DNA of 64,000 nt from Chara braunii (Eukaryota > Plantae > Charophyceae), in NCBI GenBank assembly GCA_003427395.1, contig BFEA01000036.1, positions 3,048,364 to 3,112,363 on the forward strand. Reading direction: 5' to 3'. Positions within the stretch are counted from its first letter, which is position 1. Every line of letters begins with the position of its first letter. This document shows, piece by piece, positions 22,945 to 49,726 of the stretch. A program made the position numbers and the translations under genes. The notes beneath the pieces are model-generated. The model saw nothing but the letters and a program-made list of their open reading frames with translations. It was not told the DNA's origin and did not search any database.

Positions 22945-24008
22945 NNNNNNNNNNNNNNNNNNNNNNNNNNNNNNNNNNNNNNNNNNNNNNNNNNNNNNNN
23001 NNNNNNNNNNNNNNNNNNNNNNNNNNNNNNNNNNNNNNNNNNNNNNNNNNNNNNNNNNNNNNNNNNNNNNNNNNNNNNNNNNNNNNNNNNNNNNNNNNNN
23101 NNNNNNNNNNNNNNNNNNNNNNNNNNNNNNNNNNNNNNNNNNNNNNNNNNNNNNNNNNNNNNNNNNNNNNNNNNNNNNNNNNNNNNNNNNNNNNNNNNNN
23201 NNNNNNNNNNNNNNNNNNNNNNNNNNNNNNNNNNNNNNNNNNNNNNNNNNNNNNNNNNNNNNNNNNNNNNNNNNNNNNNNNNNNNNNNNNNNNNNNNNNN
23301 NNNNNNNNNNNNNNNNNNNNNNNNNNNNNNNNNNNNNNNNNNNNNNNNNNNNNNNNNNNNNNNNNNNNNNNNNNNNNNNNNNNNNNNNNNNNNNNNNNNN
23401 NNNNNNNNNNNNNNNNNNNNNNNNNNNNNNNNNNNNNNNNNNNNNNNNNNNNNNNNNNNNNNNNNNNNNNNNNNNNNNNNNNNNNNNNNNNNNNNNNNNN
23501 NNNNNNNNNNNNNNNNNNNNNNNNNNNNNNNNNNNNNNNNNNNNNNNNNNNNNNNNNNNNNNNNNNNNNNNNNNNNNNNNNNNNNNNNNNNNNNNNNNNN
23601 NNNNNNNNNNNNNNNNNNNNNNNNNNNNNNNNNNNNNNNNNNNNNNNNNNNNNNNNNNNNNNNNNNNNNNNNNNNNNNNNNNNNNNNNNNNNNNNNNNNN
23701 NNNNNNNNNNNNNNNNNNNNNNNNNNNNNNNNNNNNNNNNNNNNNNNNNNNNNNNNNNNNNNNNNNNNNNNNNNNNNNNNNNNNNNNNNNNNNNNNNNNN
23801 NNNNNNNNNNNNNNNNNNNNNNNNNNNNNNNNNNNNNNNNNNNNNNNNNNNNNNNNNNNNNNNNNNCCCTATGGCCTATCTATTTCGAAGTCTCCACCCG
23901 GTTTTCGACCTTTGTGCTTTACAAATTTTCTACGCTATCCTTTATTATGCAACTTTACAAACGAAATCGGATGGCCTAGTCTAAGCAAATCTACCTTTTT
24001 CTGCATGG

Positions 24009-24070
<62 letters not shown>

Positions 24071-24724
24071 GCTTACTTAGAAGGATCTAGTCTACGCCAA
24101 TCTTCACAGTTCAACCCTAATCCACCTTATCCATCGATGCTTAAAAATGTGACTAATCTTCTAAACGGCGTTTTCCTTGAAAATGAACTGTTTTGTAAAA
24201 AGTGAACATAATGAAATTAATGAAGTAACCGAAAAAAAGGTAAATTGTAGAACAAAAAAATAGGATTTTAATATTTCGGCACAATGTAAACCTTGAGCAG
24301 AGAAGTGTCGAAATGATTAGAATATAAACGAAAAGAAAGACATCATATGCGAAGGAAAGAATTGCGAAATTTGTAAAACACTTGACACATTCAAACAAAG
24401 CGCAGCTCTCCAAAGTCCAAGACCTTAAGTTGCTTCAAACTATAACAACACCCTTCATATGGAGACAGTGGAAGGGAAATTTAATGCAAAAGTTCAATTA
24501 TATTAAAAGCAAAGCAGTGCCACTTACATCAGCTCAATGGTGCGTCTATGAACTCTTAAAATTACACATTGTCAAAATCTTCGTCAAAGTCCTTAGACTA
24601 TAATTGAAATCGACTTGACTACCGGGCACTGCCAGATAACACTTGAAAACGATGATGTAAGGCTATCGACTTGAATCAGATCTAGTACGCAATGGACATG
24701 TTAATACGATCAGCGTGATAAATT

Positions 24725-25383
24725 TCACGGTCTCCTCATGTGAATTGTCCAATCTTCTACAGTGTTCGTCTCATTATGCCCATCGAACGTGGGGTCCTTG
24801 TACTTTACGTAAGTTTCTATGACTTCATACTCGCGCAGCAGAAGACTTTGTACATATGTAATCGCTGTGTCCACGAGCCCATCCACAAGTGCTTTGAGCG
24901 ACGGTTGGTCCATGATCCTCCTTCGAAATGTTTCCCGTCTTCGTCTGTCGATGTCATGTGCATTGGATATGTTTACACTTGTGGAATAATCGTTATGAAT
25001 AAAAAAAGAAAGTTTGCAGCGCCCTTGGATATTTGACGCTGCACAGTACAAGGCCATCACCTTGAAGTCGTTGTGGTAGAACTTCACTGCTGAATAGTAC
25101 AATTCTGAATACGGTGTGAGCGCTTCTCGCGAATATTCTCTTGTTTCACAACACCTACGACCACAAATATACAAACAATGTTAAGGATAATGCTCCCAGC
25201 AATCCGATGCGACATCCACACCTCTGACACTGAGTACTGCATCATCGAAAACCACTTCAGGTGTGAAAAAGATAGACCCCATATCATGCCATACATTTCT
25301 GCCCCACACCATATTGCTTGGCGGTCATCCAGTCGTTGAATGAACCATTCTGCAACATATGAAATACACAAGCTCAATGACAA
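24725..25383 (-). pseudogene. Possible frameshifted accessory ORF of unknown function
   Basis: Two overlapping protein-like frames downstream of the transposase; no recognised motif. Confidence 0.3.
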
Positions 25384-26021
25384 CTAATTGATACAACAAT
25401 ACGCTCGAATGAAATATGATTACCTCTTCTCAACGACCTACTTAAAGTCTACTAATCTTCATCATCGAGAAGTAAAAGGCAAGTCAATGCAATATAGTTT
25501 AACTATATATGAATGGAAGCTCAATGACAAGTAAATGGTACACCAACACGCACGAAATGAGGTCTTCTCAGTGACTTATCCTATTGGTCTTCATCATCGG
25601 GAAGTGAAAGACATGCCAAGGTTTTCTCTCTGACCGATTTGGGAATGTGCACTCCATTTTTCAAATGCAACGTCCTTGATGACCAGCTCCACAAAACACA
25701 GTCCACGTGATGCCATTGTTGTGCTGTTGTGTTGTCTTTCTTCCATATCTTCTTCCATGCATTTGCATATTGCAGAGAAAAACATTTGACGACAGGTTGT
25801 GACACTGAATATTCAATAAGAACATGATTGAAAGCAGGCGACTTTCTATCGTTGTCAATATCAGAAATGACTTTACTCATCCACACGGGAACTCCCTGAT
25901 CGATATCATCTTGCGAAGGACGCAAGAGAACGAATTGAACCTTTTCGACATCCACAACCGGGTCGAGCTCTGCTTTTAGACGCTCATTGGCTGGCTTGAT
26001 GAACAACGGTTCCTTATTCTC

Positions 26022-26541
26022 CAACAGAAAAATTCCCACGAGAAATGAAAGTTGAAAACACATTCCATAAAAAAAAATCGTTCATACTTATAAATTATCA
26101 TTCCAATGTTCATCCAATTCTAAAATTTTCAGTTTTATTTGATAAGTTCCCGTCTAAGTATGAGTTTTCCCTTCCAATTACATCTATTTGTTCAAGATAG
26201 AATGAAAGTCTGGATGAGTTTATGAAAAATTTTAATTAAACTTTCATTCTACTACAATAATTTTTTCTAATTTAGATTGAATTAACCTATTTATGACTGA
26301 AATTTCTTACCTGGAATGAAAGCCCAATAAAAATATTTCATGAACTCATCCAGACTTTCATTCCATCTCTAGCATGCAGTTCAAATAAGAAGGGATACCT
26401 CATTCTTGGAAGAAAAGTTTTCAAGTAAGATGAAAAATTTTAAAATTGAAACGACATTTTTTAAGATGGAATGAAAATTTAAAATTTAGAACGTAACTTT
26501 ACTATAGAATGATTATTTAATTTTGGAAATTTTTTCTGTTG
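26022..26541 (-). mobile_element. 520-bp AT-rich MITE, CAACAG...CTGTTG termini, 2-bp TSD
   Basis: TIR CAACAGAAAAATT; TSD TC on + strand; excision restores NNENKEPLF. Confidence 0.85.
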
Positions 26542-26967
26542 TCATTGTTCTCCAAGAGGAAGGCAATATCAATATCCTCAGCATCGTTCTTCATAATTTT
26601 TTCCCCCGAGGGCCAAAAGTCAGTCTTGAGTGATGTTTTCGTAAAGCCAGATCCATAATTTTGCTCGATTGTGTCCAGGAAAGTTTTCCAGTGTGAAAGA
26701 GCACTCTCCTTTGAGAAGCTAACCTCATCTTTCATTCCCAACCACTCGTGTCGCTTGTTTTTCAACCACTCAACAAACATCTTCACGCCTTCAATTTCTG
26801 ATTTGAAATCCGAATTCTTATCCTCAGCGAGCTGACCACTTGATATTTCTTTAACAGGTCGAATAGGTGATGGGAGAACATGTGAAGACTCGAATGGCCA
26901 ATCGGGTCCAGCATATGCTTTATTTTCATCTCGTTTAAAACAATAGACCAGAGAAGAACAATGCGGA

Positions 26968-27489
26968 CAACAGAAAAATTTCCCTGAATTAAATAATCAT
27001 TCTAGAGTAAAATTACATTCTAGATTTTAAATTTTCATTCCATCTTTAAAAATATCATTCCAATTTTAATTTTTTTCATCTTACTTGAAAATTTTTCGTC
27101 CAAGAATGGGTTATCCCTTCTTATTTGAAATGCATGCTAGAGATGAAATGAAAGTCTATTTGAGTTCATGAAATATTTTAATCGGACTGTCATTCTAAGT
27201 AAGGATTTTCAGTCATAAATAGGTTAATTCAATCTAAATTAGAAGATATTTGTTGTAATAGAATGAAAGTTTACTTAAAACATTTCATAAACTCATCCTG
27301 ACTTTCATTCCATCTTGAACAAATATATGTAGTTGGAAGGGAAAGCTCATATTTAGACGAAAACTTATCAAATTAAATTGAAAATTTTAGAATTGGACGA
27401 ACACTGTAATGATAATTTATAAATATGAAGGAGTTCTTTTTTTATGGAATATTTTTCAACTTTCATTTCTCGTGGGAATTTTTCTATTG
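26968..27489 (+). mobile_element. 522-bp MITE, inverted sister of 26022-26541
   Basis: TSD GA; excision restores EYCTSPHCSSLVYCF...YAGPDWPF. Confidence 0.85.
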
Positions 27490-29778
27490 GAGAAGTGCAA
27501 TACTCTTTCCACTGGAACACAGGATTGTCATCCTCCATATAAAACCTAAATAAATGTAGCTTAGTATGACTGGTCAGTCTGTTGACCAGAAAGGGCTTGA
27601 CAGTCCCCCGCCAGTCAGCAATTTCATCCATGAATGTGCACAAAAGACGCTATTTTTGGAAACTGGCAGCGAGTTTGAAGAGGTCGAGCATGGTATAAAC
27701 ATCGTGCATTTTTAGTTTGCAAGAGAAATGACAGAAAGTGGCATAAACGCCAGTATGTGTATGTCCTACCAACATAAAACTGAATTCGATTTCTTTGAAG
27801 AAGCCAAATTTCACCAAAGTTGCGGCCAGAGACAAAATGTATTTGTTTTTGTTTTCTCTCCAGCAGTTGTCGGCTTGTATCCTCAATTTAGGAGGTACGT
27901 CGTTTGTCGCTTGTATGTCACGCAGAAGTTTCATAATGGATGACACCACAGCATTGGAATCATGTGGATAGCAAAAGTACCATGTGTGAACATGGACCGA
28001 TGGTGAACGGCTGTGTGTGATAATAGATGTTAAATTTGTTTTCATCATCAGAATATTCACGAATGCCTTCGACTTGTTTTCTGCGTCAAAGTGTGCAATA
28101 CTCGTCTTGCTTTGGTCCATACCGTCAATAACTATGCATAAACTGTTGGAACCTGGTCTCTTTGACTCATCCTTCCACACCTCATAAGCAGCACGGTGTT
28201 GGACCTGCAAGTCCAAGTGTTTTTCGCTTTTCGAAACAAAATAATCACGCACACTTACGAAATTCGCAGAATTGATAGATTCTTTGAACTCAACACACTT
28301 CTTGCATTTTGCAAAGTTTTGATCAACTTCATGGAATTTCACATGCCAGAAGTGTGTTCTCCACAAGTTATAGAAAACTTGGAGAGAAACAGAGGGGACA
28401 CCCAGGTTGTCAAATTGTAACTTTAACAACTTATAAATGTCAACCTTGTTATAGCAAGCAAGCAATCTCAAAACCACTCGTGATTCTCCATCTTTGATCC
28501 TCATGTCATTGGGCATGGAATCTCCATTGTTGCGCACAAAGGAGCTTAGTTTCTCGAACATCGTCACGTACGTTGCAGATGTGCGTCTGAGTCCAGTGCT
28601 ACCATGCTCTGTTATAATGTAACATTTCGACAAAGTCATCCTCTTTTTCAAAAATGTATTCTTGCACACACCCAGTGTGAAACACCATGCACTAATGCAC
28701 ACCTTTCTTTTTCCCACAATAGGTTGTACAATCTCTTTCTCATCCTTCACGAAGGTGAACCTCTTTAACATTTCAACCCACCATGCATCTCTACTTTCAC
28801 GATCCTTAGCGTAATAAGCACCCCAGACAATTTTGATGTCTTCCATGGTCATGTGAGCGCAACAATCTTGTTCACAATAATTTGAAACTTGTCCACTCAC
28901 ACTCGCAAGTGTTTTTTTGGTGAGCTTTCTGTGAACTGATTGCAAAATCTTCTTTGACCGCCGCATTCTGACACGGAAAGTATAAGGACGCTTCTCAGAC
29001 GACAAACGTTTTGGAAAAATGTCATCAAAATCAGAGACAACATCAGAATTCTCCATATCGTTGCGACACTACAGGTCAGTGTCATCATTATCGCAAGTTT
29101 GTGGATGATCAATTTTGTCTGGAGAACTGTCGGCGTCAGATAACATCGAAGCACTTGATTTCGAACCATCTTCATCACTCTCCTCAACAGAAGGCCTGTG
29201 CACTTGAAATCTCGTAGCGAACTTCTCGGCACTCACATGATACGATCTACATCGGATGTGTTCCTGTCACCGAAGCAGGCCCTACCCTGGCCTTCCGAAC
29301 CTTCTGCATCAGAGGTTTTCACTTGTTCGCGCAAGGCTGGAGATGAAATCTCGCATGTGGTTTCTTCACATGCAGCCATCCGGGACCTTTTATGATCAGG
29401 AGATTCTGGAGTTATTTGAACGTCTTCCGAAAACATTGGCAGGTCCGGCGGATTAAATTCATCATTAGGTAGTATATTAGATGCCACACAGTCCATGCTT
29501 TCCAAAGTTGTGCTCGCAGCTTGCCGTGGTGCATGCCCACCACAAGCCATTTACAACGTTTCTGCGATGACAAAACAGTGGACCACTGGCATAAGACATG
29601 TATATCAGTAACAAATTCGCAGCTAGATGGATCACATGCGGTATATGTAGAGTGCAACACATGTGGTATAGCGCGGCCACTGCTAGCCACACATAGCTGA
29701 TGTAAAAGATCGGCCCTGTGAAGGCGGAAAAAAAGCACAGTCTTCAACAGAAGAGATGCACGAGAGACACGGCAATGG

Positions 29779-30465
29779 CTGTCGTGTTGAACGCGATGAT
29801 CTACCTCCTCGGTCGTGTTGAACACGACGAAGCATCATCGCATTGCACAACACGACAGGTGCACACGGCGACAACCACCGTCACCGTGTCATCACGACGG
29901 CGCGATCGTGTTCAACATGTCCGAGCTCGACCGGAGTCGTGTTGAACATGTCCTGTCTCTGCACGACAGCCACCGCGGTCGTGTTGAAGACGAAGATGAG
30001 CGACCGTCGTCGTGTTGAACATGACGGCGTTCACGACGGCGCTCTTGTGGTGAACATGTCCGCGCTCGACCATCGTCGTGTTGAACACGATCACCAGCAC
30101 AGCGGCGATCCGCCGCGGTCCAGTTCAACACTGAAAGCGACCGTCATCGTATTGAACACGACCGTGGGGTCGTGGCGAGCCACCGCGGTCGTGTTCGACA
30201 CGATGACAGCGATCGTCATCGTGTTGAACACGACGGTGGGGTCGTGTCACCGGCACGGCGGCGATCCACCACGGTCGAGTTCAACACTGAAAGCGACCGT
30301 CATCGTATTGAACACGACTGTGGGGTCGTGACGAGCCACCACGGTCGTGTTCGACACGATGGCAACGACCGTCATCATGTTGAACACGACGGTGGGGTCG
30401 TGTTCAGCACGTGGTGTACGACCGTCATCGTGTCGAACACGACAGTCGTCGTGTCGGACTCGATG
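29779..30465. repeat. Palindrome array A (GTCGTG-TTGAA-CACGAC, ~19 copies)
   Basis: Direct; upstream of the transposase; includes a ~155-bp duplication. Confidence 0.9.
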
Positions 30466-30522
30466 ATGGACGGCTCTGCGAATTGTCTGAGAAATTTTGT
30501 TGACGTCATGAAAAACCACGAA

Positions 30523-30577
30523 CGGGGGGGGGGGGGAGGGGGCGGGGGGGGTTGGGGGGGGGGGGGGGGGGGGGGGG
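30523..30577 (+). repeat. Poly-G tract (G-quadruplex potential)
   Basis: Direct. Confidence 0.9.
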
Positions 30578-31256
30578 CGGTGAGGATTCTAAACTCACCT
30601 AGGTCAAAGGAGGCACGAATCGGAGCAGCAACGCAGCTGCCGTGGCGGAGCAACGCAGCTGTCTGTCGTGTCAACGGGAAGGTGACACTGCACTGGTACA
30701 TTTTTCCGGGAGCGACGCAAGGGAATAGACCCTTGGATCCTCCTACGGAGACCGTTTAAACAGTCGTGGAAGGCACCGGCAGTCGAATCGTCGCCCCCTT
30801 GGCACCGATTCTCACCGCGGCACCGGTCTTCCCCATACCCGATCCTGGCCCTCAGCCGACGGATCGACGGCCCAGACTTTCCCAGGATTCGAAACGTCGC
30901 TCCAGCGGCACCTGGTCCCGAACCCACACCCCGCAGGCCGCATTCCCCCGCAGGCCCTCCACAGAAAGTATAAATAGTGGTGTGAGCCCACCGTTTTCCA
31001 TTTTTGCTAGTTTGTCGAGAACGACGGAGCGTTGCGGAGGTTCGCGCATCGTCCGAAGCCGGCGGAGCGCTGACTTGCACATTGGAGGCTCACGCAGAAC
31101 GCAACGGAGATCCCACTCGCACATCGGAGGTTCATGCAGCATCGGAGCAAAGTTCCGAGCATCCGCATCGGAGGCAGCAGCGGAGGTCTGGGAGAACGGT
31201 AAACCCCCGTGAAGCAACCACGTGCTGCCACGTGGCATTTCCGCCCTCGCAGAGGC

Positions 31257-32432
31257 TGTCGTCGAGTCGAACTTGACGGTGGACCAGCGCCAAGGCCTAT
31301 GGCCACTGTCGAGTCGAACTCGACAACGGCTTGCGGTCGAGTCGAACTCGATAACGGCCTGGGGTCATCATCGAGTCGGACTCGACAATGGCCAGAGGCC
31401 TTGGCGCTGGCCAACCGTCGAGTTCGACTCGACGACGGCCGTCTGGCCCGACTCGACGACTGCCGGCTGGCCACTGTCGAGTTCGACTCGACGACTACCG
31501 GCTGGCCACTGTCGTGTTCAACTCGACGACTGCCGTCTGGCCACTGTCGAGTCGAACTCGACGACAACCATCTGGGCTTTCCCGATTCGTCCGTTGTCGA
31601 GTTCGACGACGGTATACCGTCGAGTTCGATTCGACGACGGCCTTCGTGCACTGTCGAGTCGAACTGGACATGATAGTACACCAACCAGTTTCAAAACATC
31701 CAGTTCCTATCGAGTCGAACTCGACAATGGCCTGGGGTCATCGTCGAGTCAGACTCGACAATGGCCAGAGGCCTTGGCGCTGGCCGACCATTGAGTTCGA
31801 CTCGACGACGGCCGTGTGGCCCGACTCGACGACTGTCGGCTGGCCACTGTCGAGTTCAACTCGACAAGTGCCGGCTGGCCACTGTCGAGTCGAACTCGAC
31901 GACGACCATCTGGGCTTTCCCGATTCGTCCGTCGTCGAGTTCGACAACGGCACACCGTCGAGTTCGATTCGATGACGGCCTCCGTCCACTGTCGAGTCGA
32001 ACTCGACATGATAATACACCAACCAGTTTCAAAACATCCAGTTCCTATCAAATCTGTCAAAAAGTTGGTAGACGGCCTCCGCCCACTGTCGAGTCGAACT
32101 CAACAACGGCCGTCTGGGCTTTCTTGATTCATCCGTCGTCGAGCTCGAGGCCTTGGCAGTGGCCCACCACTGAGTTCGATTCGACAACGGCCGTCAGGCC
32201 ATACGTCGAGTTCGACTCGACGACGGTCGGCTGGCCTCTGTCGAGTCGAACTCGACAACGGTCGTCTGGCCACTGTCGAGTCGAACTCGACAACGGCCGT
32301 CTGGACTTTGTCGATTATCCGTCATCGATTTCGACTCGACAACGGCAAGAGGCCGTGGCGGTGGGTGTTGGGATCGACTCGACAGTAGCCAGAGGCCTTG
32401 AAGCTGGGCCGTTGTCGATTCGAACTCGACGA
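31257..32432. repeat. Palindrome array B (GTCGAG-TCGAA-CTCGAC, ~27 copies in both orientations)
   Basis: Direct; upstream of ORF303; includes a ~350-bp direct duplication. Confidence 0.9.
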
Positions 32433-32693
32433 AGGATAGGAGCCGATGGCCTTTGTCGGGACGAGCGCAACGATGGATAGCCGCCGATGGCCTTTGTCGT
32501 TTTGTGTGTCTTCTCCTTGTGCATTGGTCATTCGCAATGCCTCATTGGCTCCTTGATGGACAGGCGCCGATGGACTTTGCCTTTCTGACTCCTCGTTGTA
32601 TCTAGCTACGACGGTAGTTATTGTGTGCACAACATTCGCAACTGCGATGGCTACTTGTTGTGTGAGCGAGTTCGACCTTAGCAATGGCTCCTT

Positions 32694-33605
32694 ATGTGGT
32701 TGTGTATCGTTTGTGTGTGTAGGACATTCACGATGGCTCACCGGTTCGATTACTTGTTCCCTTTAAATGCTAGCGCGCCGTACATACGGGGTTTAAGGCA
32801 GGCGACTACTATACTTGGGGCCCATAGAGATGACTTCGACACGGACCCTTGGATGAGCGTGTTGCCCTGGCTTGACAGGCCCTTCGATGCATGGTCCGAA
32901 TTAGACTTGGAGAACACCATGAAAGACTTTCCATGGGCGTCTGATTATCGACTTGCTTCCAGCCAGGAATGGGGGACATTCATCTTCCTCGACCACATCC
33001 TCGTGATGAAACACACGCCGGTGTTGTCTGCAGCATTTCGTACCCGAGACTTATCTTTATCATTGACTGCGCACAACGTGTCGTGTTCGCCGCGCTTGTG
33101 GGGACCATCGATGAAGGAGGAGTTGTTGGACTGTGTGAAATACAACCAGTTTCTAGAGAAATATCCCCTTCCCTTCGGGGACAACTTGAAGGGGAGGGTT
33201 TCGTACTTCTGCGTGCATGTTGAACTCTGTTGTTTCCCTTTCGCTAGGGTTCTCTGTGTTTCGGTAAGAAATAGAAGTAAGACTTCAGCGGAGGCAAGTA
33301 TTTACGTATCCAAGAACGAGCTCATCGTTGATGGGCACTCGATTATGTTACCGCATGGTTTTAGGAACAGTAAGTTTGACGTGAAACTGGCGGGGCAGGT
33401 TGACGCACCCCGGCATTGGGAGGAGGTCGAGGAGTACGTGACGGTCATTCGGGACGCCATCGGTCACACTTTAGCCATAACATGTGGTTTCGTCCGTGCG
33501 CGATACATGTCTCGCTTCTCCGCCACTGCGACCCTGTGTAGTTCCCAGCTCCTAACATACGGTTCATCCTTGAACACACTGTACGGTTTCGGGGCTGAAC
33601 GATAG
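32694..33605 (+). CDS. Uncharacterised ~300-aa transposon-associated protein (ATG at 32733, or splice acceptor at ~32722)
   Basis: Uninterrupted ORF; clear homolog at 45447-46364 (DPWMxV, DAWSE, EWG, SPRxW, KEELLDC, FLExYPL, RVLCV, RDAIG, GSSxNxLYxFG). Confidence 0.8.
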   Translation: MWLCIVCVCRTFTMAHRFDYLFPLNASAPYIRGLRQATTILGAHRDDFDTDPWMSVLPWLDRPFDAWSELDLENTMKDFPWASDYRLASSQEWGTFIFLDHILVMKHTPVLSAAFRTRDLSLSLTAHNVSCSPRLWGPSMKEELLDCVKYNQFLEKYPLPFGDNLKGRVSYFCVHVELCCFPFARVLCVSVRNRSKTSAEASIYVSKNELIVDGHSIMLPHGFRNSKFDVKLAGQVDAPRHWEEVEEYVTVIRDAIGHTLAITCGFVRARYMSRFSATATLCSSQLLTYGSSLNTLYGFGAER

Positions 33606-33997
33606 GCGAGGTCGTAGGAGAGGTCGTGGGAGATGAACAGTGTAAGAAACGTGAACTATTCAACGAAAGTGTGAACTGAGACTATGTAAGCGTGGGGGAT
33701 GAACAATGTAAGAAATGTGAGCTATTCAGCAAGAGTGTGAACTGAGACTATGTATGTTATGGGAGCAGTGAGTTTGATGTAAGATTATCGATTACTTTGA
33801 AATACGTTAATACTATTTGTCGCACGTTGTGGGTGCCGGTTGCATGCCTTGCCAATTGAATGTTTGGAATTGATAATAGATGTAGGCTTTCAATTGATGT
33901 GCCTTGTTTGATGTGACTTATTGGATACGCCGCTCTCGTGTTCTGTTCGCCTGCTATTTGACACACCGATCCCATTCTCTGTCACGATGGCCAGCAA

Positions 33998-34432
33998 CGA
34001 TCGAGTCCAACACAATCAAGCTGGCCTCGAGGTTCGCGCTGGCCCGCCACGTTCGAGTCGAACACGAACGGGTCGCGATCTTCTGGGTCACGCTGGCCCA
34101 CCAAGATGAAGTTGAACACGATCGAGCTGGCTGTTACGCTCGAGTCGAACACGATGAGTCGAGCCCGATCGCGTCAAACACGATCGAGTTGAACACGAAC
34201 ACGATCGCGTCGAACATGGTTGAGTTCGGGCGCTGGCCCACCACGATCGAGTCGAACACGATCGAGCTGGCCCGTCACGCTCGAGTCGAACACAATCGAG
34301 TCGAACACGATCGAGTCAAACACGATGGAGTCGAACACGATCGTGTCGAACAAGATCGAGTCGAACAAGATCGTGCCGAGCACGAGCACGATCGTGATCG
34401 AATTGAACACGATCCCGGTCGATTCGAACTCC
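33998..34432. repeat. Palindrome array C (ATCGAG-TCGAA-CACGAT), partly a 15-bp tandem repeat
   Basis: Direct; immediately upstream of the large gene. Confidence 0.9.
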
Positions 34433-34536
34433 ATCTCCGGGGCTGCCTTTCCACGAAGGTGTTGCGCTGCCTTACCACTATCTAAAACGTTTCACTTTTC
34501 TGCTCCTTCTGATTTTTGGCTTTCCGATGATGTGAT

Positions 34537-37500
34537 GTGTTGCTTTCAGATTCGACAACGCTGCAAAACATGGAACGAGGGGGGAAGGCAAGTAAACGAC
34601 AAGCAAGTAGGACTTCAGGGAGCATGGAACAATCTCCGACAAAATCGAAGGGGACGCCGACCGCTGCGGGGGGGAGTCAGGAGGCACCGGGGTCTAAGAG
34701 GCAATGCACCCCAGTTCCACGTCACGAGTCCACGAGCACTCCGGTTCCGAGGGGTGCACCTTCCACAGGCACTCCGTTGACTAGTGTTCGGGGCTCTGGA
34801 CCGAATAACATTATGTTGATGACTGGCGGGCCTGTGGGTCAGGAACGTGTGCCTGGTCCGCCACAGGGAAGATCTGCAGTGGACGTTGTGCCCGGACGTA
34901 AGCCGTCTGGTGAAGGTAAACCGTATGGTGAAACGACTACCGCGGGTCGGCGAGACGATGTGCCCGTAACATCTGCAGTGGACGTTGTGCCCGGAAGTAA
35001 ACCGTCTGGTGAATGTAAACCGTCTGCTGAAACGACTGCCGCGGGTCGGCGAGACGATGTGCCCGTGGTTGATCACAAGGATAAGTTCTGGATGTTGGAC
35101 TGGGTGGGGGAGATCAGAGAACCATCGAGTGGCCTTGTTCTATACGTGGTCATGAAAGAAAATATTGTGCCGGTTGGCGGCCTGGTGAGGTGGACTAGAC
35201 AAGGTGCACCGTCTGCAATGTTCGAGTTGACGATGGTCCTGCATGGACGAGGGGAAAAAATGCCAAATGTTAAACATGTCGCTCTTCGATGGGCCAAACA
35301 CGTGGGATTTGGAAAGTCGATGGTTGATGTATTCAACCCGCCAGGGAGAGCGGAAGTGAAGTTGCCTGACCTCGTCGACGTCCTCGGGTTCTTCGACAGT
35401 AATGTGATCGCGGGCGGAGAGCCGGTTGTGCATCCAGAAGACCGCATATCGGAGCCTAAATGCGTGCTTTCGAAAACCGTGGAGACTGGGCCTTCGATCA
35501 CGATCCGCGACACACCGCCGGCTCCGAAAGATGAGCAGATTGGAGAGAAGGGTCCGTGTCGCGGACTGGTCGTGCCGTCAGCCCCTATGAAGTCCAGGCC
35601 AACGGCGACCAAAGCACCAGTTGCCTTGGGCAGCCATCCGCGCTATGTAGCGGCCACCAAGGGACCTCTCCCCTTGGTGGGCCAGCAGCGCTACGACTAC
35701 ACTGTGCCAAGCCGCGCAGAGAAAGCCCATGAATATTTTGGAGATGATGATGAAGAGAACAGCGAGGAATATTCGGAACGAGCAGGAGGACATGAACAGT
35801 ATGCGGTGGGTGTTGGTGACATGACAAGGCGCTATGGGGAAACAAGTAAAGTGGTTGGACAGGATGAAGACAGTGAGCACGCTATGAGCGAATCGGGTGG
35901 AGAGGTTGGTCTGGCAGGGGGATATGGGAGCAGCGACGAAGGATGTGAGGGGGATGTGCATCCAACACGAGGGGGGGTGCACCACGAGACAGTGGTTGTG
36001 GCTACGCATACAAATGCTGCAGGGATCGTTGAGCGAAAGAGGAAGCACAGGCAGGAGAGGAGAAGTGCTTTGGATAGTAAACGGAGTAAGCAAGAAGCGG
36101 GTCAAAAAAGACAATTGAAACTATTGTCCGTGGATGAGGCGGTCCAGCGCACACGGGAGACTGAGGCGGCCACGAAGAAAAAACAGCAGCCAAAGAAAAG
36201 AACGGCAAAGGGTGGTGTCATGGAAAAGACTTCCGTTTTTCCAGCGGAACAACCACAATCGGATGAAGAGGCCAAAGGTAAGACAGTTACTAGGCCGCCA
36301 AGTTTGCGAAATGTGGCATCGGTGACTTCTTCTGGTATTCTCAGCAAAGGCTTCTTCCTTGAGTTGGACGAGCATGGGAACCAGTGTCCAGACATGGAAT
36401 TCATTTATGTCAAGTTCGACAGAATTCTGGATATCCCCGACGGGGAATTCAGATACAATCAACGCTATTTTGTGCAGCAGACGATTGATGGCATTTATGA
36501 CGCAATGGTTGCATTAGGTGAGGCTGCTATCAGAGAGAGAATGACTAAAGCTGTCCTTTTGTTGGTTCCCCTCCGTGATACATTGCATACAAACGCTTCA
36601 GGAAGGATTGTGAGAGCAAGGAGGGTGCTGCGCGATGAATTCGAACTCGGCTCTGTGAACAAGTACTACTACTACCCTCTCAGCGGTCAACATAACGTGA
36701 CGGCGGCAAGAAGGTGTTTTGTTGAACGCCCTGACATCGCACAAGAGCTCCGATTGGATCGCTGGACTGCGAGGCCTGTTTATTATCCGGATAAGAGCAT
36801 GGACAATTACGGCACGCTGAGCACTTTCCAGAACGCAAAGGACAAATGGAATACCCCACCGCACCAGATCGTGGTCATCCAGAACATACTGAAGTTGCGG
36901 CACACATCGAACTGTCATGAAGCTAAAGGCGGCTCAGCGGCAGAAGTGAAAAATGCAGATTATAGAAATTTTGCAGGAAAGACTCTTCGTTTGACCGGAT
37001 TCGTAATTTGGTTGACATGTCCCTTACTACTCAATGGAGCGGCCAGTGGTTGACGCCCTCGGGCCCTACATGTTATTGGCAAGGGCGACAGATGACGTTT
37101 TCGAAAAGGTGAAACAAGTGTACGCCGCTTGGGAAGCTGGACAATTGTCGGGGAGAGATGTTGTGAAGCCTGCTACCAAACAAGGTGAATCAGGGAAGGC
37201 ACCAAGGGGTGGACCCGAATTTGAGTTGAAAGGTGGAGTTAGGTTTCCGGTTCACTGGGTTCAAGATACCAAAGGACCGGGTTACCGCGTGGATGTGCAC
37301 GATCCGGATATCAGAGCGTGAAAGCCTTTTTCAGCGCTTGGGAGGCGTGAGCGGCTTCAACTGTTGCGAGACATTATCACAGGCAATGTAACACTGACTC
37401 CTAAGTAAAGTGGAGCTGCTCAACGTGCCGGGAAACATTCAACGGAGACATACGAGGAAATGGTGAAGATTGAACGAGCAATGTTGAGGATGTTTCACTA

Positions 37501-40500
37501 CTTCGTCTTCATTTCTGATCCTCACAGGAAGTCGTCAGAGTGGATAAAACCATTCTTCTACAATCTTTCCGATGTGTTTGATAAGTACTGTCATCAAGGA
37601 TTGACATCCGAGAGGTGGATCGACCAACGTCGCCATTTCAAAGACATGAATTTGGTGCGAACGTTCCCGGCTACACTTGGAGGAGCGAGAGGAAAAATGA
37701 GAAGAGGGCTCCAAGAAAACAACATCACTTGCTGCGAAGTGCCCCGAAGAGTTCGTGCAGTTTGTCAACAAACTGCTGCGCAGATCAGAAACCAGGGGTT
37801 CGCAAAGCATAAGAATGTTGGGCACAGCGAAATATATACATTTTCAAAAACAGAACGTGAACTCTGTTTTCGTCTCGTTCCAATGGGAACCAAGCGATAT
37901 TTCAGACGAGATGGATTCCAAAGAAATATATAGAGTCGTCAAACATCTGAGTTGCCACACGGCCGTGCTGGATTTGTGTCACCCAACCCCGATAGAGGTG
38001 TGGACTGAAGAAGTCTTTGATGGTCTACGAATATTCATGGAAAAACTGGTTGGTGATTATTGGACACTATTGTGCTTCGTTCCGCGGTCTTGCGAGTTTA
38101 CATTTTTCAAGCGAGTTACAAGTTGGGACATTCACATTCACTTGTCTATTCTAAAGTGGACTCGTCGGCAACAAACGAAGGCGAAGCATTCATATAAGGT
38201 TGCGAACTTGACTTTGGAGGACATAGACAAAATGGTTGTCATCATGTACTCCAACGATGGGGATTATCACCGCAACACTATTCCCTTGCTTGAAGACATT
38301 CCAGCAAGCACTCCAGCTGCAGATCGATCATCAGGCGAGCAGGCGGGTGACTTATCAGCACTTGTGCGCAGAGAGAGAAGGCCAAAGATGTTGCCTGATG
38401 TCGTGGAGAAGAACTTCACGCCCACGAAGTTGAAAATGGCAGGTATGGAGCCAAAGGAGAAATTTGTGTACAAAGGTATGGAAAGGGAGCCAAATGCGAT
38501 GGTGGAGACATTGGAGCATTTTTGTCCTGCGGATGAGGTGGTTGTTTTCCTGGGAAAAGGTCATGCGGCGTTGATTTGGGAGTTGTTAAAGAGTCATCGT
38601 CATTGCATTGTTTTGGAAAGGAAGGGTATGAAGTTCGAGTTTCTCGTTCAATTCGTCAACAGGATGGTCAAGAGTGGAGGTTACTTCACCAAATTGGTTA
38701 AGCTGCCTCCTCGACATGATGAAAAGCGTAATCTCGTCTACAAAGTCGGCCAAAACATCGTCAACATTTGGGAGTTCCTTTTCGAGATTAAGCCACAAAA
38801 CAGAGGGGAACGTGCATATGTCGCCAGAAGGCGAAAAATGAAATCACTTCTGAGGGGGTATCATAAGGCACCGGCGGAGACGGAAGTTGCATTTCTAGAC
38901 CGTTTGGAGATGATGTACTTCGACGAACACATCGGGGCGTTTACAATCGTTGCTTATGCAACTTGTTTTGGGGAAGGCTTTGATGCTGAGGACTCAGAAG
39001 AAGAAAGTGAAGATGGTACTTTGCAAGCGGCTTTGGCAGATGAGAGGCAAAAAACTTGTAGCTCGGCTTCGCAGGAGATGGGTGCGCCGGGCACATCGTC
39101 CGGTTCTGGGGGGGCTTCAAGTATGGCAGTTTCAACGGACCAGTTACCGAATCGTCCCTCAACTTCTTCGCTTATGCAAGTAACACCTTCTTACATGGCG
39201 GGCAACACAACAGCGCTACCTTCCGGCGCAGTTCGGTATGATCCGAGGGTGCAGGCAATGCTCTCCCAAGAGGTTATGGCAAGTCTGTCAGCACTTGCAC
39301 ATAGCCCGACTACTGTTTTGGAATTGCTATGCTCTCAAACTCCTCAACAACCTCCGTCTGAGCCTTTGGAGTACGAGATTGAGGACATGATCCCTCCGGA
39401 CATTGCACGGCTTCCTGGACCTATTGTGTGCCAAGACAATTATACGGTGATGCTTGACAACGTATGGGGTCATCACATTATATGACACCCCCACCACTTC
39501 CAACCTGCATTGGCGAGAGGGAACTGGGTAATGGCTATTAAAGAAGAAGGGGAGTGGCAATTTTGCCTTCACAAATGTATGTCACAATCCACGTTTGTCA
39601 CACACGCCAAAAATCAGATTGGCAAGCGACTACTGCGACTTAATCCGAAGGTTTCTCAATCCAGATTGGATGCAAGGACAGAAGAAATTTTTCAGGAGTT
39701 CAAAACATCTCGATAGCTTGAGTATCTGGAAGAGTTCTATGATCGAGAAACAAGTCAAGCTTTTGGATATAATTGGCGTATTGAAGAGGAACTTCAAGAC
39801 AAAGCTGGGGAAAGGAAAGGAGCGAGCGGCGATGAGAGTGGCAAGGGATCAAGATCAGGCAGCGGTGCGCTTGGCAAGGGAACAAGATCAAGCGGTGGTG
39901 AACATGGAAAGGGATCGGAACCACGGTGCGGTGCCAGTGGCAAGGGTCTGGGACCGAGCGTCGGTGCAAGTGGAAAGTCGATAACTTAAAGTCATGGTGA
40001 ACTGCAAAAACACGAAATGTGTCAAGGGCGTCAAGCAACAGAGGGAAAGGTATTAGGACCAAGTGGCGGTGCACATGACAAGGGATCGGGATTGCCTCTG
40101 GGATCAGGACCAAGCAGCGGTGCACATTGCAGGGGATCGGGTTCGCCTCTGGGATTAGGACCAAGCGGCGGTGCACATGGCAGGCGATCGAGAGGCGATG
40201 CAAGTGGCCAGGATTTAGGAGCAAGCGGCGGTGCAAGCGGCGGTGCAAGCGGTGGTGCAAGCGTCAAGGGCGTAAGTCATGGTGAACTGCCGAAATGTAT
40301 CAAGGAGGTCCTTCCGGATGACCAAGTTTGGGCGACCACTGTGTTGGCGAGCGAGAGTGTTACTGCGCAAGTGGATAATACAAGCGCACTTGCAGAATTA
40401 GAGATGCCATCGTTAGATATGCCAGCCAAGAAAGATGAGCATGAAGTCTCTCTGGACATGAAGAATGAAAGCGCGACTGCAGGTGCAAAGGAAACTGTTA

Positions 40501-40700
40501 GGCCATCGAAGAGGATGAAGGACATATAGTACTAAGTACAAGGGAGCAACATACGCTTGTACAGCCTGAACTTATGATTGCAAAATTAGAAGCACAACAG
40601 TCTGCTAACCTCGTGATATCTATCAACGAATCTCCTTTTACACCATCGCATGGTGCGATAGAAGGTCGTGTTGAAGACAAAGCGTTAGTGAGCCACCGAG
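34537..40700 (+). pseudogene. Very large (~2000 aa) protein: disordered N-terminus, ParB/Srx-like domain (~36400-36850), beta-class amino-MTase-like domain (~37950-38660), conserved C-terminal block
   Basis: Colinear ORFs at 34537, 37034, 37460, 37755, 39510 and 40017 broken by stops and frameshifts; YNQR...YYPLSGQHNVTAARR; TAVLDLCH...LKWTR...EREPNAMVETLEHFCPADEVVVFLGKGHAALIWELLKSHRHCIVLE. Confidence 0.65.
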
Positions 40701-41300
40701 GTGAGCACGTACTTATCTCTAAGGGAATATTACATGCACTCATCTCATAGAAAGTAATTTTTTGACTAGGTTTGCAAACGTACGCTCGGTGATGAGAAGA
40801 AATGAAGTAAAATATTGTGTATCTCTTATTTGCAATTATGTGAAAAATTGAACTTAAACTCATAATGTTTTGTCTTGTCAATCATTGTCGTTTTCTATTG
40901 ATGAACATGTAGGGCGACAAAAAGAACTGTGGAAAACGACACACGTACGTTCACAAAGGCAGAGTGAGAAGAATATTATTCATCATGGCTTGCAAGCCTT
41001 ATCAACTTTGTCGTTATTGCCCAAAAAAGAGAGAAGAAGACTTACACCCATGACATTTCCATCTATGAAGCCACCTGCCCTAAGGATGTTTAAAGTTGTT
41101 GGAATAAGCCTCAGAGAAGGGAAGAAATTGCATCGCGAAGGTTGCAATTTATCTATTGTGGATGGCAGCTCTGATAGCGAAATAGATAGACAACCAAAAA
41201 CATGAACTCGGGTCTACGTTGTACATCACATAACAAAAAGTTCGTTTTTGTATGAAGTCTTAGTCGTTCCATTGTTGTTTATATGTGTGTTTGTATGCAG

Positions 41301-42103
41301 TTCATGACCCTTCGTTCCAGATTCCTTTAGCAACAAAACGCCTCACCGTAGAAGAAAAGGAGTATCTTGACATGATTACAGGCAACAGCGAAGACAATGA
41401 AGCATACGATATTGTCGATTACAAGGGGAGCTGGAAGGTGGGAAAGGAAGACATCATGGTCGTCGTCGAGGATGGGAAATGGTTAAATGACGAAGTCGTC
41501 AATTTGTAGATGTTAGCTGTCCAAATCACCAATGACCACATCAAGGTTGATTCGGCATGTACGGAAGTGACAAGAGATCATGAAAACTCTTAAAGTGTTC
41601 CTTTTGTGTACATTATCAATTCTTTTTTCTTCACTCGATTGTCAGGTCCTTCGAGGTTTGAAACTGCATATTCCGAAGGGATGAAATGAGTGAAGGACAC
41701 AAATCTTTTTTATTATGACTTAGTGATTATCCCTCTACATTTTGGAAATCACTGGGCCTTAGCTTATGTCAGCATAGACGGTCCAAACTGTAAATTCCAC
41801 CTCATAGACTCTCTCCCTCGTGTTGACTATGTTTCAGTCCTCGAACGTTTGGAAGATTTTTTCGAAGTGGAGTTTCATCGACACAATCTTCACGAAAGAT
41901 ATCATGTGGACGGGCCTACATCCTCCTTTTATACATCAGAAGATGGGATTCCTCCTCAAGAGGATTCTTGTAGTTGTGGTGTTTTTATGTTAGGTTTTGC
42001 ATCTTTGCTTGCAAGAGGTCACTTCCCTCCATTTGCTTTCTCACAAGCCAATATTTCTGATATGAGGCTAATAGCATTTGATATTTTGTCCATGGTTAGA
42101 TAG
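41301..42103 (+). pseudogene. Ulp1/SENP-like C48 cysteine protease
   Basis: WLNDEVVN, INSFFF, IIPLHFGNHW, IDSL, PQEDSCSCGVF (His-Asp-Cys triad and oxyanion Gln); several in-frame stops. Confidence 0.9.
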
Positions 42104-42535
42104 GAAAGTCAATGAGGTGCGACTAAAGCTACAGTCCGTAGTTAATATTTTGTTCATGAGATTGACATGTTTACTGAGTGTAAATATTCGAGGAAAAAAC
42201 TTGACATTGTATTTTATTTTGAGCACAAGCAACACGGGAGCATGATTGTTTTGAACTTGTATAATCAATGACTGTCACATTAAATTTTTCCTTCAACTTT
42301 TCATATATGAGCATTGTTTTGTCGTTCCTTCAACTTTGCATTGCTAAGCATTGATATATGAACATTGTTTCGTCCTTATTTTGCTTTGTCGTTATTTCGT
42401 CTATAATTTCCTCATTTCGTTCTGCCATTTTACAGTTTTAAAAAAAAGTGAACATGAAAATAATTTCACTTATAACGAAAACACTGTTTCTATCTATTGA
42501 TACAACGAGATGTTCTCTTTCTTTCTCTCTCTCTC

Positions 42536-42611
<76 letters not shown>

Positions 42612-43799
42612 ACACACACGTGCTTACCTACAAACAACTCTTTAAAGAGAGAAAAAGAGAAGTACCAATACGGAATAGAGAACTATGACTGTGAAATCGA
42701 CTATGAATGAGAGAAGTGAACAAGGAAGGACACACATGCGAAACACCTCATCTTCTGAAACAATAGACATTCCCTTCATTATGGTACGGACAACTTTCGT
42801 CGGGAATAAACGGATGAGTGAATGCCAAGTGCATTTCGACAGAAAGTGCATACATCCATCCCCGTTCTACATCGAGATGCACAACAATACGCACAAGACA
42901 GCCCATGCCTCTCGAAACTCGCAGTTTGTTGTAGACAATAGGAAAGGCCACTATCAGAGGCGCACCGAAATGCCCTAAGAGTCGTATTGCCCTAGTCGGA
43001 AGTCACCGCGGAGGGTGATTGCTTCTCCAAAAGCTCCTGTACGAGGAACGAACCAGCCATTGGGTTCTGATGTACCTGCTCGCCTCCTGCCATCCAGCTT
43101 CAGGCAGAGGCAGCCACCAGGTGTCCTCTACAAACTAAATTTTCCCAGAAGGGAAACAAATCTTTAAGTTCTTGTCGTCATGCCGAGGACAACAAGTCTC
43201 CTTCAAGTGGTTGTTCTGAAGCCGAAAACCAGCGCTCTCCCTAGCGAACATCGGCATAATGCCTCCCGTCGTGGAAGAAAATATGATGCTTGAACTCACG
43301 ATTGAGCGCGTGATAGTTCCATATGAAGCTCGGTGCATACACAGTGATCTTCGCTTTAAACGGTTCGAGAGTGTTCTCCAATGAAAAGCTCCACTTGCCC
43401 ATACCACACCACTTCCCCTCGCCACAAACCAAGGACAAGTTTTTGCAACCTGTGCTCGAGCTCACCATGAAGCTCGACGACTGTGTGACGCACCTTCCCC
43501 ATGCTGAGCGCCCCGGGGCATGGTGAGCGAACTCCACGAACGTATGAGAAAACCCTAAAGTTGAACAACTTTTGCCTCAGCGTGACAGCGTCACATCGAA
43601 TTTTTTTAACCAAACTTATTAAATTTGGTAAAAGATTATTTCAGGGCCAAAAATTCTATTTTTTTCGTTGAATTGTTTTTAGTGAGTTTTCTATGACATG
43701 AGCTACGTGCATATAAATTTTCAAGGCATTTTGTTAAGCCAAACAAAAATGAAAAATCGCCAAAGATAGCGGTGTCAAAATGTGCTCGGCCGCTCAGTT

Positions 43800-44326
43800 T
43801 GTGCAAGGAACCCGACTGTTCACCAGTTGATGGAGTGTTTCACATTGCATGCATGAATACAGATCACACAGATTGTGTAGCCTCACACAAAGCTCAAAGG
43901 AAAATGAGTGGTCGCCAGATAGCGCAATTCAATTATCACAACCAAATTTAATAGAGAGAATCAAAAGTTAAAAAATGTATAGCACCCAACAAAATTACAA
44001 GTCTTCTTCATCAAACGTGAATTCCTGGCCTGACGCACATCAGCGCCAGCAGCCAATCATCATCAATGGCGCTCAACAGGTAAGTAACACCATAGCTTTC
44101 TTCTCTCTCTTCTCTCCTTGTCTTTCTTCTCTTTGTCTCTCTCTAAAGTCCTGGTCTACTCACACTCATCTCGCATGCACACTCTCTATCAAACGAGGAT
44201 CCTAGTCTACTCACACTCATTTCGCATGCACACTCCCTATCACACGAGGATCCACTCTGCATACTACTCACTGGTACTCCTACCACTAATCCATCTGCTG
44301 CTACTAAATTTTGCTAGTGCAGCTAT
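43800..44326 (-). mobile_element. Partial LTR, same family as 57311-58370
   Basis: High similarity to 57311-57780 (CAAGGAACCCGACT...GATAGCGCAATTCAATTATCACAACC...CAGGTAAGTAACACC). Confidence 0.85.
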
Positions 44327-44518
44327 GGACATGTTATTCGTTAAAATATGACATTATATTTTAAATTGGTACTCGCACACTATTAATTTCATGTCTAAAT
44401 CGCTATATTTTTGGACCTGAATGGAACTTAGGAACCGGAAGAATGCAATTGAGAGGTCATAAATTGAATCTAAACTAGAGATTTAAGGCAATCACTTACT
44501 GATCATGATGAATTAAGT

Positions 44519-45225
44519 GTGGATTCCATTGCACTTCCATCAATTTTGTAACTTAAAAGCCATTACGGTTACAACATGAATTGTTGAACTCTCAATTTCT
44601 TTACACCTTGGTCAATTTTGAGTCAGCATTGAGTCGGACCTCTTCTAGATGACATTGTGACTTCCCTTGATTTATTGAAACTCAATAGTGGGACTGTCAC
44701 ACTTACGACAAACAAATGAATGGCTTAAGTACTAATAATCTAGTATGGATTCCGTCGCACTTCGATAATTTTTGCTTTAACTATATTAAATGTATACTAA
44801 TCACGACAAAGTTTAACGAATCACACGATAAATGAATGACACGACAAACGAGATTACGGTTTAAGTACAGTGACTATGGGTTCCATCGCACTTTGATAAT
44901 TTATGTACTTCATACTTATTAAAAGACGTGACACTCAGTCTGTTCGGTGTGATTTAAGGATGGATTCCAACAATGTGACACTTCGATAATTTTGGACTTT
45001 ATCACACTTCGACAATTTATGTGACTTTAAAGACGAAACTGACATGTCACTGTCATACATTGAAATGTGCTTGAATCAGACGTACTACACATGACATGGT
45101 GTGAAGGCGAAACTATATGGTTTATGTATGGATTTCGGTGCACTTTGACAAAAAATCATAAACCGATAAAACATTGTCATATTAAACTGAAATTCATGTG
45201 AGTACCATGGATTCTGTCTCACCTC
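44519..45225. repeat. Dispersed motif ATGGATTCC-N3-GCACTTYGATAATTT, ~6 copies
   Basis: Copies near 44519, 44746, 44876, 44959, 45128 and 45206. Confidence 0.6.
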
Positions 45226-45446
45226 AAGAAATGTCGTACCCATGAAAAATTAAAAGTCAAATATTGTACTGGTAACTAAAGTTCAAAATTATACGCTGGG
45301 TGCAAGAAATCGCAAATGCAACATTGAAGTACGTCTACATTAAACGCTACAAGCCAACTGTACATTGAACTACGTCTAAATTAAACGCTACGAGTCGCAA
45401 CAATGTAAACTTTCTAAGACGTTATCATTTACAAAATTTGAAGTTC

Positions 45447-46364: not shown

Positions 46365-46572
46365 ATGAAAATGAAATGTGGAAATAGTAGAAAAATCGCC
46401 TTCATGATAAACTTAACTTCGGAAATTGCCGAACCATCACCAACCATCTTAAAAAATTTAACCGTGGACCGTGGACAAAATTCGCCACGCAGAATCATCG
46501 CATAAATAATATACGCCCTTCTGAATTCTCGTTCGTCCAAACAATTATTTTCAAAAATCTCACTCCCTCACT

Positions 46573-49701: not shown

Positions 49702-49726
49702 CCCCCCCCCCCCCCCCCCCCCCCAC

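Follow-up and report, generated by a model that had tools for sequence, protein, structure and literature searches.

We analyzed a 64,000-nucleotide window of the Chara braunii genome (contig BFEA01000036.1, positions 3,048,364 to 3,112,363 of the forward strand; NCBI GenBank assembly GCA_003427395.1) and found an 18.3-kb DNA transposon at window positions 24,164–42,488. A minus-strand transposase gene diverges from three plus-strand genes, which encode an orphan protein (ORF303), a long protein with predicted ParB-like and amino-methyltransferase folds, and a Ulp1-type SUMO protease [layout: transposase (−) <- arrays -> ORF303 -> long gene -> Ulp1 (+)]. An initial annotation of the window had proposed this divergent arrangement, with palindrome arrays between the genes; all four genes are present, and the arrays are real (see below). 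The element is dead and decayed, one of many copies of its family in Chara braunii, with stops, frameshifts or insertions in every gene but ORF303; the broken genes were searched as individual stop-free segments or by way of the unbroken frames in sister copies. On the reading pursued here, to which we give an even chance, the family is a giant Sola1 cut-and-paste element with a self-recognition module: the long protein would bind the element's own palindromes and keep the element expressible, its methylase fold would be non-catalytic, and Ulp1 would deSUMOylate.

Element boundaries and copies

Sister loci, designated here by L numbers, were fetched from assembly GCA_003427395.1. Homology is lost at 42,488 in four of four fetched sister copies (L001–L004, on other scaffolds), each with its own flank, and the reverse complement of this right end reappears at 24,164. 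Because sister homology stops at 42,488, the inverted end lies at 24,164 and TCTA flanks both, we delimit the element at these positions (ends AACGG...CTGTT, with the 4-bp target-site duplication [TSD] TCTA on both sides). The limits first proposed, 23,868–43,798, have to be redrawn accordingly; the left one marks only the edge of an N-gap.

24,160–24,163, no strand: left TSD, TCTA, identical to the four bases after the right end
24,164–24,195, plus strand: left terminal inverted repeat (TIR), starting AACGGCGTTTTC, imperfect, about 25–32 bp; the L006 copy starts with an equal terminus at its position 4232, and L006 homology begins at exactly 24,164
42,457–42,488, minus strand: right TIR, ending GAAAACACTGTT (CCGTT in sister copies); homology to L001–L004 ceases at 42,488, where the flanks differ
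42,489–42,492, no strand: right TSD, TCTA

A second full copy, assembled from L006 and L003, is 18.2 kb long, with termini as in the window, flanks ATAG and ATAA, and TIRs matching at 25 of their first 26 bases. This anatomy shows that the transposase works on short AAC-ended TIRs and creates 4-bp duplications. Sola elements generate a 4-bp TSD (PMC10741241), and animal Sola1 elements prefer AWWT targets (PMC3845634). The target flanks seen in Chara (TCTA, ATAG, ATAA, TTAA and AATT) are AT-rich, and only one fits AWWT; since the published Ectocarpus Sola1 also lacks AWWT, we do not take this preference as defining for all Sola1 elements.

The TIRs do not contain the palindrome of the arrays. 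A subterminal motif, AAAAGTGAACAT, occurs near both ends (24,198 and 42,444) in direct rather than inverted orientation, and is found in sister copies too. Two other repeats were considered as element ends and rejected: an inverted repeat at 26.0–27.5 kb, which consists of two inserted MITEs (miniature inverted-repeat transposable elements), and a direct repeat at 43.8/57.3 kb, which is a flanking repeat. An Rfam search of the sequence matched no family.

A family with fixed gene order

As the initial annotation had supposed, the genes travel together. The whole gene order is kept, with common termini, at three loci (L002, L003/L006 and L004/L005) at 70–90% identity, and comparison of TIRs and TSDs across copies, a check that the annotation had suggested, gave common termini and 4-bp duplications. 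L001 is a left-truncated copy. At L011, about 30% identical, a divergent transposase, a long gene and Ulp1 occur together, in a linkage that spans assembly gaps, and a metagenome contig (L009) carries an intact 1,419-residue long-gene frame followed by Ulp1. All 17 of the two-module Chara gene models keep the order ORF303 -> long gene -> Ulp1 (seven ORF303-long, ten long-Ulp1).

Among the annotated hypothetical proteins of Chara braunii are homologues of the long gene, at up to 88% identity. A profile search for the long protein gave 185 clusters at 50% identity, comprising about nine lineages below 45% identity; among 20 clusters checked for source, 17 were from Chara braunii and three from JGI contigs. 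No non-element donor gene was found among the long-protein homologues, and further scans of metagenome and viral contigs gave no match.

Between subfamilies, the ratio of nonsynonymous to synonymous substitution rates (dN/dS) was 0.2–0.36 throughout the long gene, and Ulp1 gave about 0.5. The transposase gave 0.16–0.19 against L003/L004. Among close copies the ratio rose to 0.3–1.0, as expected from post-insertion decay. These ratios show that selection on the element maintained the accessory genes.

Two side observations concern individual loci. After Ulp1 in L009 (6,480–6,570), a short stretch, read across a frameshift, resembles the final part of histone H3, and may do so by chance. In L008 (10,001–18,719), gene model CBR_g36276 runs a FAS1 exon of the host together with a copy of the long gene, a chimeric annotation of a kind typical of many family models.

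A Sola1-type transposase

The transposase matches DUF7869 (E 1e-39) and carries the motifs DGMDQ, QADNC-RENKN and GHTH (D-GMDQ, QA-D-NCxRENKN and GHTHx-D-VD). It also has a zinc motif, CxxC-H, and a conserved set of three aspartates, the third of which is decayed in the window copy and intact in L004.

25,584–29,550, minus strand: Sola1-type DDD transposase of about 900+ codons, interrupted by stops, one frameshift and two inserted MITEs; the motif of the third Asp is decayed
26,022–26,541, plus strand: 520-bp AT-rich MITE within the transposase, ends CAACAG...CTGTTG, 2-bp TC duplication; L006 has the empty site
26,968–27,489, minus strand: second copy of the 520-bp MITE in opposite orientation, 88% identical

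Compared by eye, these motifs match those of Ectocarpus Sola1-1 motif for motif, and they resemble the reference Sola1-1_AP (from the supplement of PMC3985635), unlike Sola2 or Sola3. The match with the Ectocarpus Sola1-1 motifs therefore places the transposase, initially called Sola-like, in the Sola1 group of the Sola superfamily, as judged from sequence. In a tree of DUF7869 relatives, the cargo-bearing Chara transposases and one JGI protein form a clade with 100/100 support. At the closest non-Chara transposase locus examined (one locus, in the sister clade), neither cargo nor arrays were present within 10 kb.

The transposase C-terminus (25,584–26,020) is a conserved aromatic-rich domain, with an FWLG-like motif in relatives and no Pfam match, and may be a Tudor/PWWP-type chromatin reader. 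Among animal DUF7869 transposases, gene models (P0044 and P0055) carry a fused domain, Ulp1 in Branchiostoma or OTU in Saccostrea, a hint that this Sola1 lineage goes with ubiquitin-like proteases elsewhere too. The two MITEs, which make up about 1 kb of the element, were inserted 430 bp apart, each after TTCTC; the CA ends and 2-bp TSD of this MITE family recall CMC-type elements.

Predicted ParB-like and methyltransferase-like folds in the long protein

The long protein is predicted to comprise, in order, a small N-terminal domain, an acidic linker, a ParB-like domain, a helical middle, a beta-class amino-methyltransferase fold, helical and C-terminal domains, and a low-complexity tail. Stop-free frames extend over 938 residues in L001 and, as noted, 1,419 in L009.

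34,570 to about 40,700, plus strand: long gene, broken, about 1,970–2,050 codons as the sum of its segments
36,349–36,860, plus strand: candidate ParB/Sulfiredoxin-like domain, with motifs YNxR, GQH(N/T) (36,685–36,696) and S-x-x-DN-x-K
37,830–38,670, plus strand: degenerate beta-class N6A/N4C methyltransferase fold, with motif IV as DLCHP (37,971–37,985) and motif I as FLGKGH (38,547–38,564)

The long protein had no significant match in sequence searches of Pfam, PHROGs, NCBIfam, PADLOC, PDB and phage genomes, and a single-sequence structure prediction had a predicted local distance difference test score (pLDDT) of 34. An intact homologue (P0141) was modelled over its 869 conserved residues from 144 aligned pieces, with a mean pLDDT of 85. 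Foldseek searches of PDB with this model returned only beta-class amino-methyltransferases (M1.HpyAVI, M.RsrI, M.BceJIV, CcrM, MTA1 and METTL3; E 1e-5 to 4e-3), with a permuted Rossmann fold in which motif IV precedes motif I (probability 1.0, target TM-score up to 0.72). Against viral models, the matches were methylases, ParB-methylase fusions (E 1e-4) and ParB-only proteins (E 8e-3 to 3e-2, probability 0.9–1.0). In the ParB part, topology and motifs fit ParB, with N-x-R, GQH and the invariant Asn retained. The structural model thus firmly supports the methylase-fold assignment and lends fair support to a ParB-like fold, in line with the ParB and amino-methyltransferase parts named in the initial annotation.

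The PP-aromatic part of motif IV is needed for amino-methyl transfer in known enzymes. The catalytic [DNS]PP[YFW] was found at the motif IV position in none of 63 aligned homologues, which have D-L-C/A/S-x-P instead. The FxGxG of the SAM-binding motif I is likewise lost, being replaced by F/L-L-G-K-A-H-A (L-G-K-x-H in all lineages) with one Gly retained. Conserved despite this loss are the motif IV Asp (60/63), the motif I Gly (44/47), an acidic motif II (42/44) and a Y-x-x-x-ERxP segment, and one member gave a weak ErmF match over the SAM-binding region (E 0.0095). The long gene is under purifying selection even though DPPY and FxGxG are lost in all lineages. From its sequence, the methylase fold is apparently a disabled pseudo-enzyme without the standard catalytic site.

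Palindrome arrays precede three of the genes

Matching of a 17-bp palindrome at two or fewer mismatches gave 26 sites, 25 of them in 31.2–32.4 kb, and none in 100 shuffles. At four or fewer mismatches, 45 sites fall into three blocks, one before each of the transposase, ORF303 and the long gene. The arrays are restricted to the element's promoter region. They are rich in TCGA and GATC sites.

29,781–30,464, no strand: Array 1, nine sites, variant GTCGTGTTGAACACGAC, in 72/84/156-bp tandem units, upstream of the transposase
31,261–32,430, no strand: Array 2, 26 sites of the 7-3-7 palindrome GTCGAGTCGAACTCGAC, upstream of ORF303
34,052–34,434, no strand: Array 3, 10 sites with a 15-bp period, upstream of the long gene

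The palindrome is common to subfamilies with about 70%-identical long proteins, about 40%-identical ORF303s and 80%-identical transposases. In a sister family (described below), where the long protein is 29–37% and the transposase about 40% identical, it is replaced by a different palindrome (AAGT-Y-CG, eight bases, CGAACTT), and the family-1 motif is absent. Because the motif is kept where ORF303 falls to 40% and changes where the long protein falls to 29–37%, this comparison, which samples two motif families, fits the long protein rather than ORF303 as the palindrome reader. The transposase is a rival candidate, since its identity follows an equal pattern.

Accessory genes

ORF303 lies upstream of the long gene in seven Chara gene models. 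It evolves fast: subfamilies with 80%-identical transposases have ORF303s about 40% identical. It had no match in Pfam, PHROG, PDB or phages, and no protein-database homologue within the searchable length range. Two conserved open reading frames, ORF-X and ORF-Y, come in addition to the four genes recognized initially.

24,728–25,348, minus strand: ORF-Y, about 207 codons with two in-frame stops, a conserved accessory gene downstream of the transposase
32,694–33,605, plus strand: ORF303, an intact orphan frame, present in L002, L003, L004 and (twice) L010
40,858–41,202, plus strand: ORF-X, about 115 codons, with homologues in L001–L004 and L008 (E 6e-6) and weakly in L009
41,300–42,103, plus strand: Ulp1/C48 SUMO-type protease, with three stops in the window copy and the His-Asp-(Gln)-Cys residues present

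ORF-Y shows 67% amino acid identity in L006/L005 and a dN/dS of 0.23. It scored weakly (6–8 bits) against an ORF303 profile, and hhalign was not significant; it is possibly a remote paralogue of ORF303. ORF-X is a candidate small conserved gene or upstream exon of Ulp1. The Ulp1 protein matches Pfam PF02902 (E 2e-12, 47.9 bits against a cut-off of 20.7), its frames are open over 280 codons in L001 and L002, and it comes after the long gene in ten gene models and in L009, L010 and L011.

A proposed self-recognition module and its alternatives

ParB proteins bind short palindromes. For this reason, and because the TIRs lack the motif and the motif follows long-protein divergence, we infer that the long protein binds the palindromes. 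By analogy with ParB on parS, it would bind the element's 17-bp palindromes before each promoter, and this binding would keep the element expressible. The methyltransferase fold would serve in DNA binding or as a scaffold, without catalysis; because the catalytic motifs are absent, it probably writes no mark. Ulp1 would strip SUMO from silencing factors or from element proteins, opposing SUMO-dependent silencing.

Several observations weigh against self-recognition by the long protein. In the two motif families compared, palindrome type follows the transposase no less than the long protein. A comparison of CpG decay between arrays and genes, using a crude classification, found no difference and no protection of the arrays; dead copies need not keep such protection. 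The ParB assignment comes from a structure search with the whole 869-residue model (E 1e-4 to 3e-2) together with motifs, not from the isolated domain, and the source of that model is 32% identical to, and not itself, the window copy. ParB sequence-profile tests, including a profile comparison with one phage ParB, were not significant. Spo0J-type ParB CTPases need Arg after GxH for CTP binding; here that residue is Asn or Thr, in place of the GxxRR arginine patch. No helix-turn-helix was identified in the long protein.

A possible but unlikely alternative is that the arrays are bound by the transposase or by ORF303/ORF-Y, in self-activation, and that the ParB-pseudomethylase serves transposition by compacting or bridging the 18-kb element or by tethering it to a target. 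The transposase would suit this role in that its identity tracks palindrome type (80% versus about 40%) and in that, according to a 2026 preprint, transposases activate cognate copies sequence-specifically (10.64898/2026.08.24.746577). ORF303, for its part, lies between arrays 2 and 3 and is the fastest-evolving of the proteins, VANC-like in this respect. However, the TIRs lack the palindrome; the motif is unchanged while ORF303 diverges to 40% identity; and the closest non-Chara transposase locus has no cargo or arrays within 10 kb.

We regard as rather unlikely, by analogy, an on-chromatin parS/ParB-like system in which the long protein would load at family-specific palindromes and spread along the element, the dead methylase fold would either read bases or act as a decoy for the host's methylase complexes, and the SUMO protease would undo silencing; within one genome, at least nine lineages would each have their own protein-palindrome pair.

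It is improbable that the long protein instead methylates DNA through a non-standard active site, marking its own element with N6-methyladenine (6mA) or N4-methylcytosine (4mC), as proposed for the Ectocarpus protein. The intact beta-class fold, the conserved residues of motifs IV, I and II and of the Y-x-x-x-ERxP segment, the weak ErmF match and the abundance of TCGA and GATC in the arrays would fit such an enzyme, but the PP-aromatic of motif IV is missing in every lineage and the glycine-rich loop is degenerate.

Very improbable, and already disfavoured, is that the genes are passively captured (Pack-type) cargo, or that they form a module, toxin/addiction-like or host-manipulating, that has nothing to do with the arrays: annotated copies are mostly fragments, the L008 long gene has no nearby transposase and the L011 linkage spans gaps, but there is purifying selection between subfamilies, gene order is fixed across lineages below 45% identity, and the homologues include no non-element donor.

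A deleted copy of a sister family

The initial annotation had described three of the genes as recurring, rearranged, at 44–54.6 kb. Homologues are indeed present at 45.4–54.5 kb (transposase 39% identical, ORF303 38%, and the C-terminal part of the long gene), but we assign the cluster, from its sequence, to a separate, internally deleted copy of a sister family; the interpretation as a rearranged copy was rejected, as L010 holds both TIRs and the missing genes.

44,329–54,457, no strand: deleted sister-family copy, with a clipped left TIR at 44,329, no Ulp1 and no right end
45,447–46,313, minus strand: sister-family ORF303 paralogue
about 46,670–49,500, minus strand: sister-family transposase
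49.8–52.2 kb: sister-family array with the different palindrome
52,201–54,457, plus strand: sister-family long gene, C-terminal third only

Window positions 44,329–49,711 are 91% identical in DNA to L010 4,162–9,326; the alignment then jumps from the array to L010 41,652, in the last third of the long gene. At L010 the sister family has 40-bp TIRs at both ends; its genes and arrays run ORF303a, transposase, tandem arrays, ORF303b, long gene, Ulp1. The ORF303 of the second cluster is the paralogue behind the transposase, where family 1 has ORF-Y. Because of gaps, insertions and the lack of a clean TSD, the L010 unit may be composite.

The sister-family array at L010 (17,263–21,520) consists of a 1.22-kb unit repeated 3.5 times, with several palindromes per unit. 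The sister unit seems to be nested in a third element, between that element's transposase and an ORF-Y homologue (E 6e-5; L010 3,400–4,153 and 47,388–50,101), and another long gene with Ulp1 adjoins it; such elements cluster and nest, as in the window. A 90%-identical repeat flanks the second cluster (43,804–44,328 and 57,314–57,779), its left copy cut at the sister element start. At 56,817–56,855, a Nextera mate-pair junction adapter lies between exact 151-bp direct copies (56,664–56,814 and 56,853–57,003), an assembly artefact. Related 300-bp hairpin (MITE-like) elements occur at 54,747–55,059 and 60,073–60,365, and a strong CpG-rich inverted repeat at 58,500–58,870.

Comparison with known systems

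The closest precedent is Ectocarpus Sola1-1_Ec32, a 21.5-kb Sola1 element whose termini are AACCG-CGGTT and whose TSD is 4 bp long. A gene on the opposite strand encodes a 1,104-residue protein with ParB and N4C/N6A methyltransferase domains; the authors suggested that this protein binds the element that encodes it and modifies it (PMC12477816). The Chara element is likewise a giant Sola1 (18.3 versus 21.5 kb) with AAC-type termini (AACGG-CCGTT), a 4-bp TSD, the same transposase motif set and, opposite the transposase, a gene with ParB-like and amino-methyltransferase domains, recognized at fold level; a self-binding hypothesis is common to both. They differ in host (a brown alga versus a streptophyte), in the accessory protein (1,104 residues with a methyltransferase predicted to be productive, versus about 2,000 residues with catalytic motifs lost) and in TIR length (282 bp versus about 30 bp). 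The Ectocarpus paper mentions no Ulp1, ORF303 or arrays, and the likeness of the accessory proteins is judged at fold level. In the light of this element, the premise of the initial annotation that Sola elements carry only a transposase is not supported.

Red-algal giant Plavaka (EnSpm) elements with PAG1-3 are 17–19 kb long and carry orphan, N6-adenine methylase and ParB-domain genes, the last beside tandem inverted-repeat arrays (bioRxiv 10.1101/2025.02.11.637652). The Chara family shares with them the form of a giant multi-gene DNA transposon with inverted-repeat arrays adjoining a ParB gene. Plavaka elements, however, have a transposase of another superfamily, a methylase-SET and a ParB-2OG oxygenase in separate genes, and no Ulp1.

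In Arabidopsis VANDAL elements, VANC targets are family-specific tandem arrays (PMC5735166). VANC is derived from plant MAIN/PMD (PMC13547354), Ulp1 is fused to VANC in KIU elements, and Ulp1 domains are recurrent cargo of Mutator-like elements (MULEs) (PMC13317346). Like the VANDAL and KIU elements, the Chara element is multi-gene, with family-specific short motifs in non-coding tandem arrays and an element-borne Ulp1. Unlike it, they have a MULE transposase and a VANC without ParB or methylase fold, and their anti-silencing is proven, whereas that of the Chara element is hypothetical. No window ORF matched PMD or DUF1985, and the transposase is DUF7869, not MULE.

Phage ParB-methylase proteins (of the ParB-terminase locus) and a chlorophyte ParB-fused Dam have also been described (Iyer et al., PMC4738411). 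As in the phage proteins, ParB is followed by an amino-methyltransferase in one predicted Chara polypeptide, and the best viral fold matches are such fusions; the catalytic motifs are intact in the phage and chlorophyte proteins but lost in Chara, and the long protein has no sequence-level match to phage proteins.

The Ectocarpus and Plavaka precedents also leave the initial designation of a new system unsupported. Whether the family had already been described with this gene content is answered in part: a similar Ectocarpus element is published, and no description of the Chara family was found in a literature search without Repbase and most subscription papers. New here are that the host is a streptophyte, that the pseudo-enzyme state is conserved, that Ulp1 and up to three orphan genes are combined with it, and that the expansion is so deep. 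Proof that an element binds its own sequence and frees it epigenetically exists only for VANDAL elements; for the ParB/methylase accessory genes of brown and red algae, self-binding and freeing were proposed in 2025 as a hypothesis. The Chara family extends this theme to a streptophyte lineage and shows that a methylase fold can stay under selection after loss of its catalytic motifs. It also explains more than 100 'hypothetical' Chara braunii gene models as transposon fragments, and since one genome holds many diverged protein-palindrome pairs, the question of specificity is directly testable. The Chara element is a more elaborate variant of the brown-algal kind described in 2025, rather than a new class.

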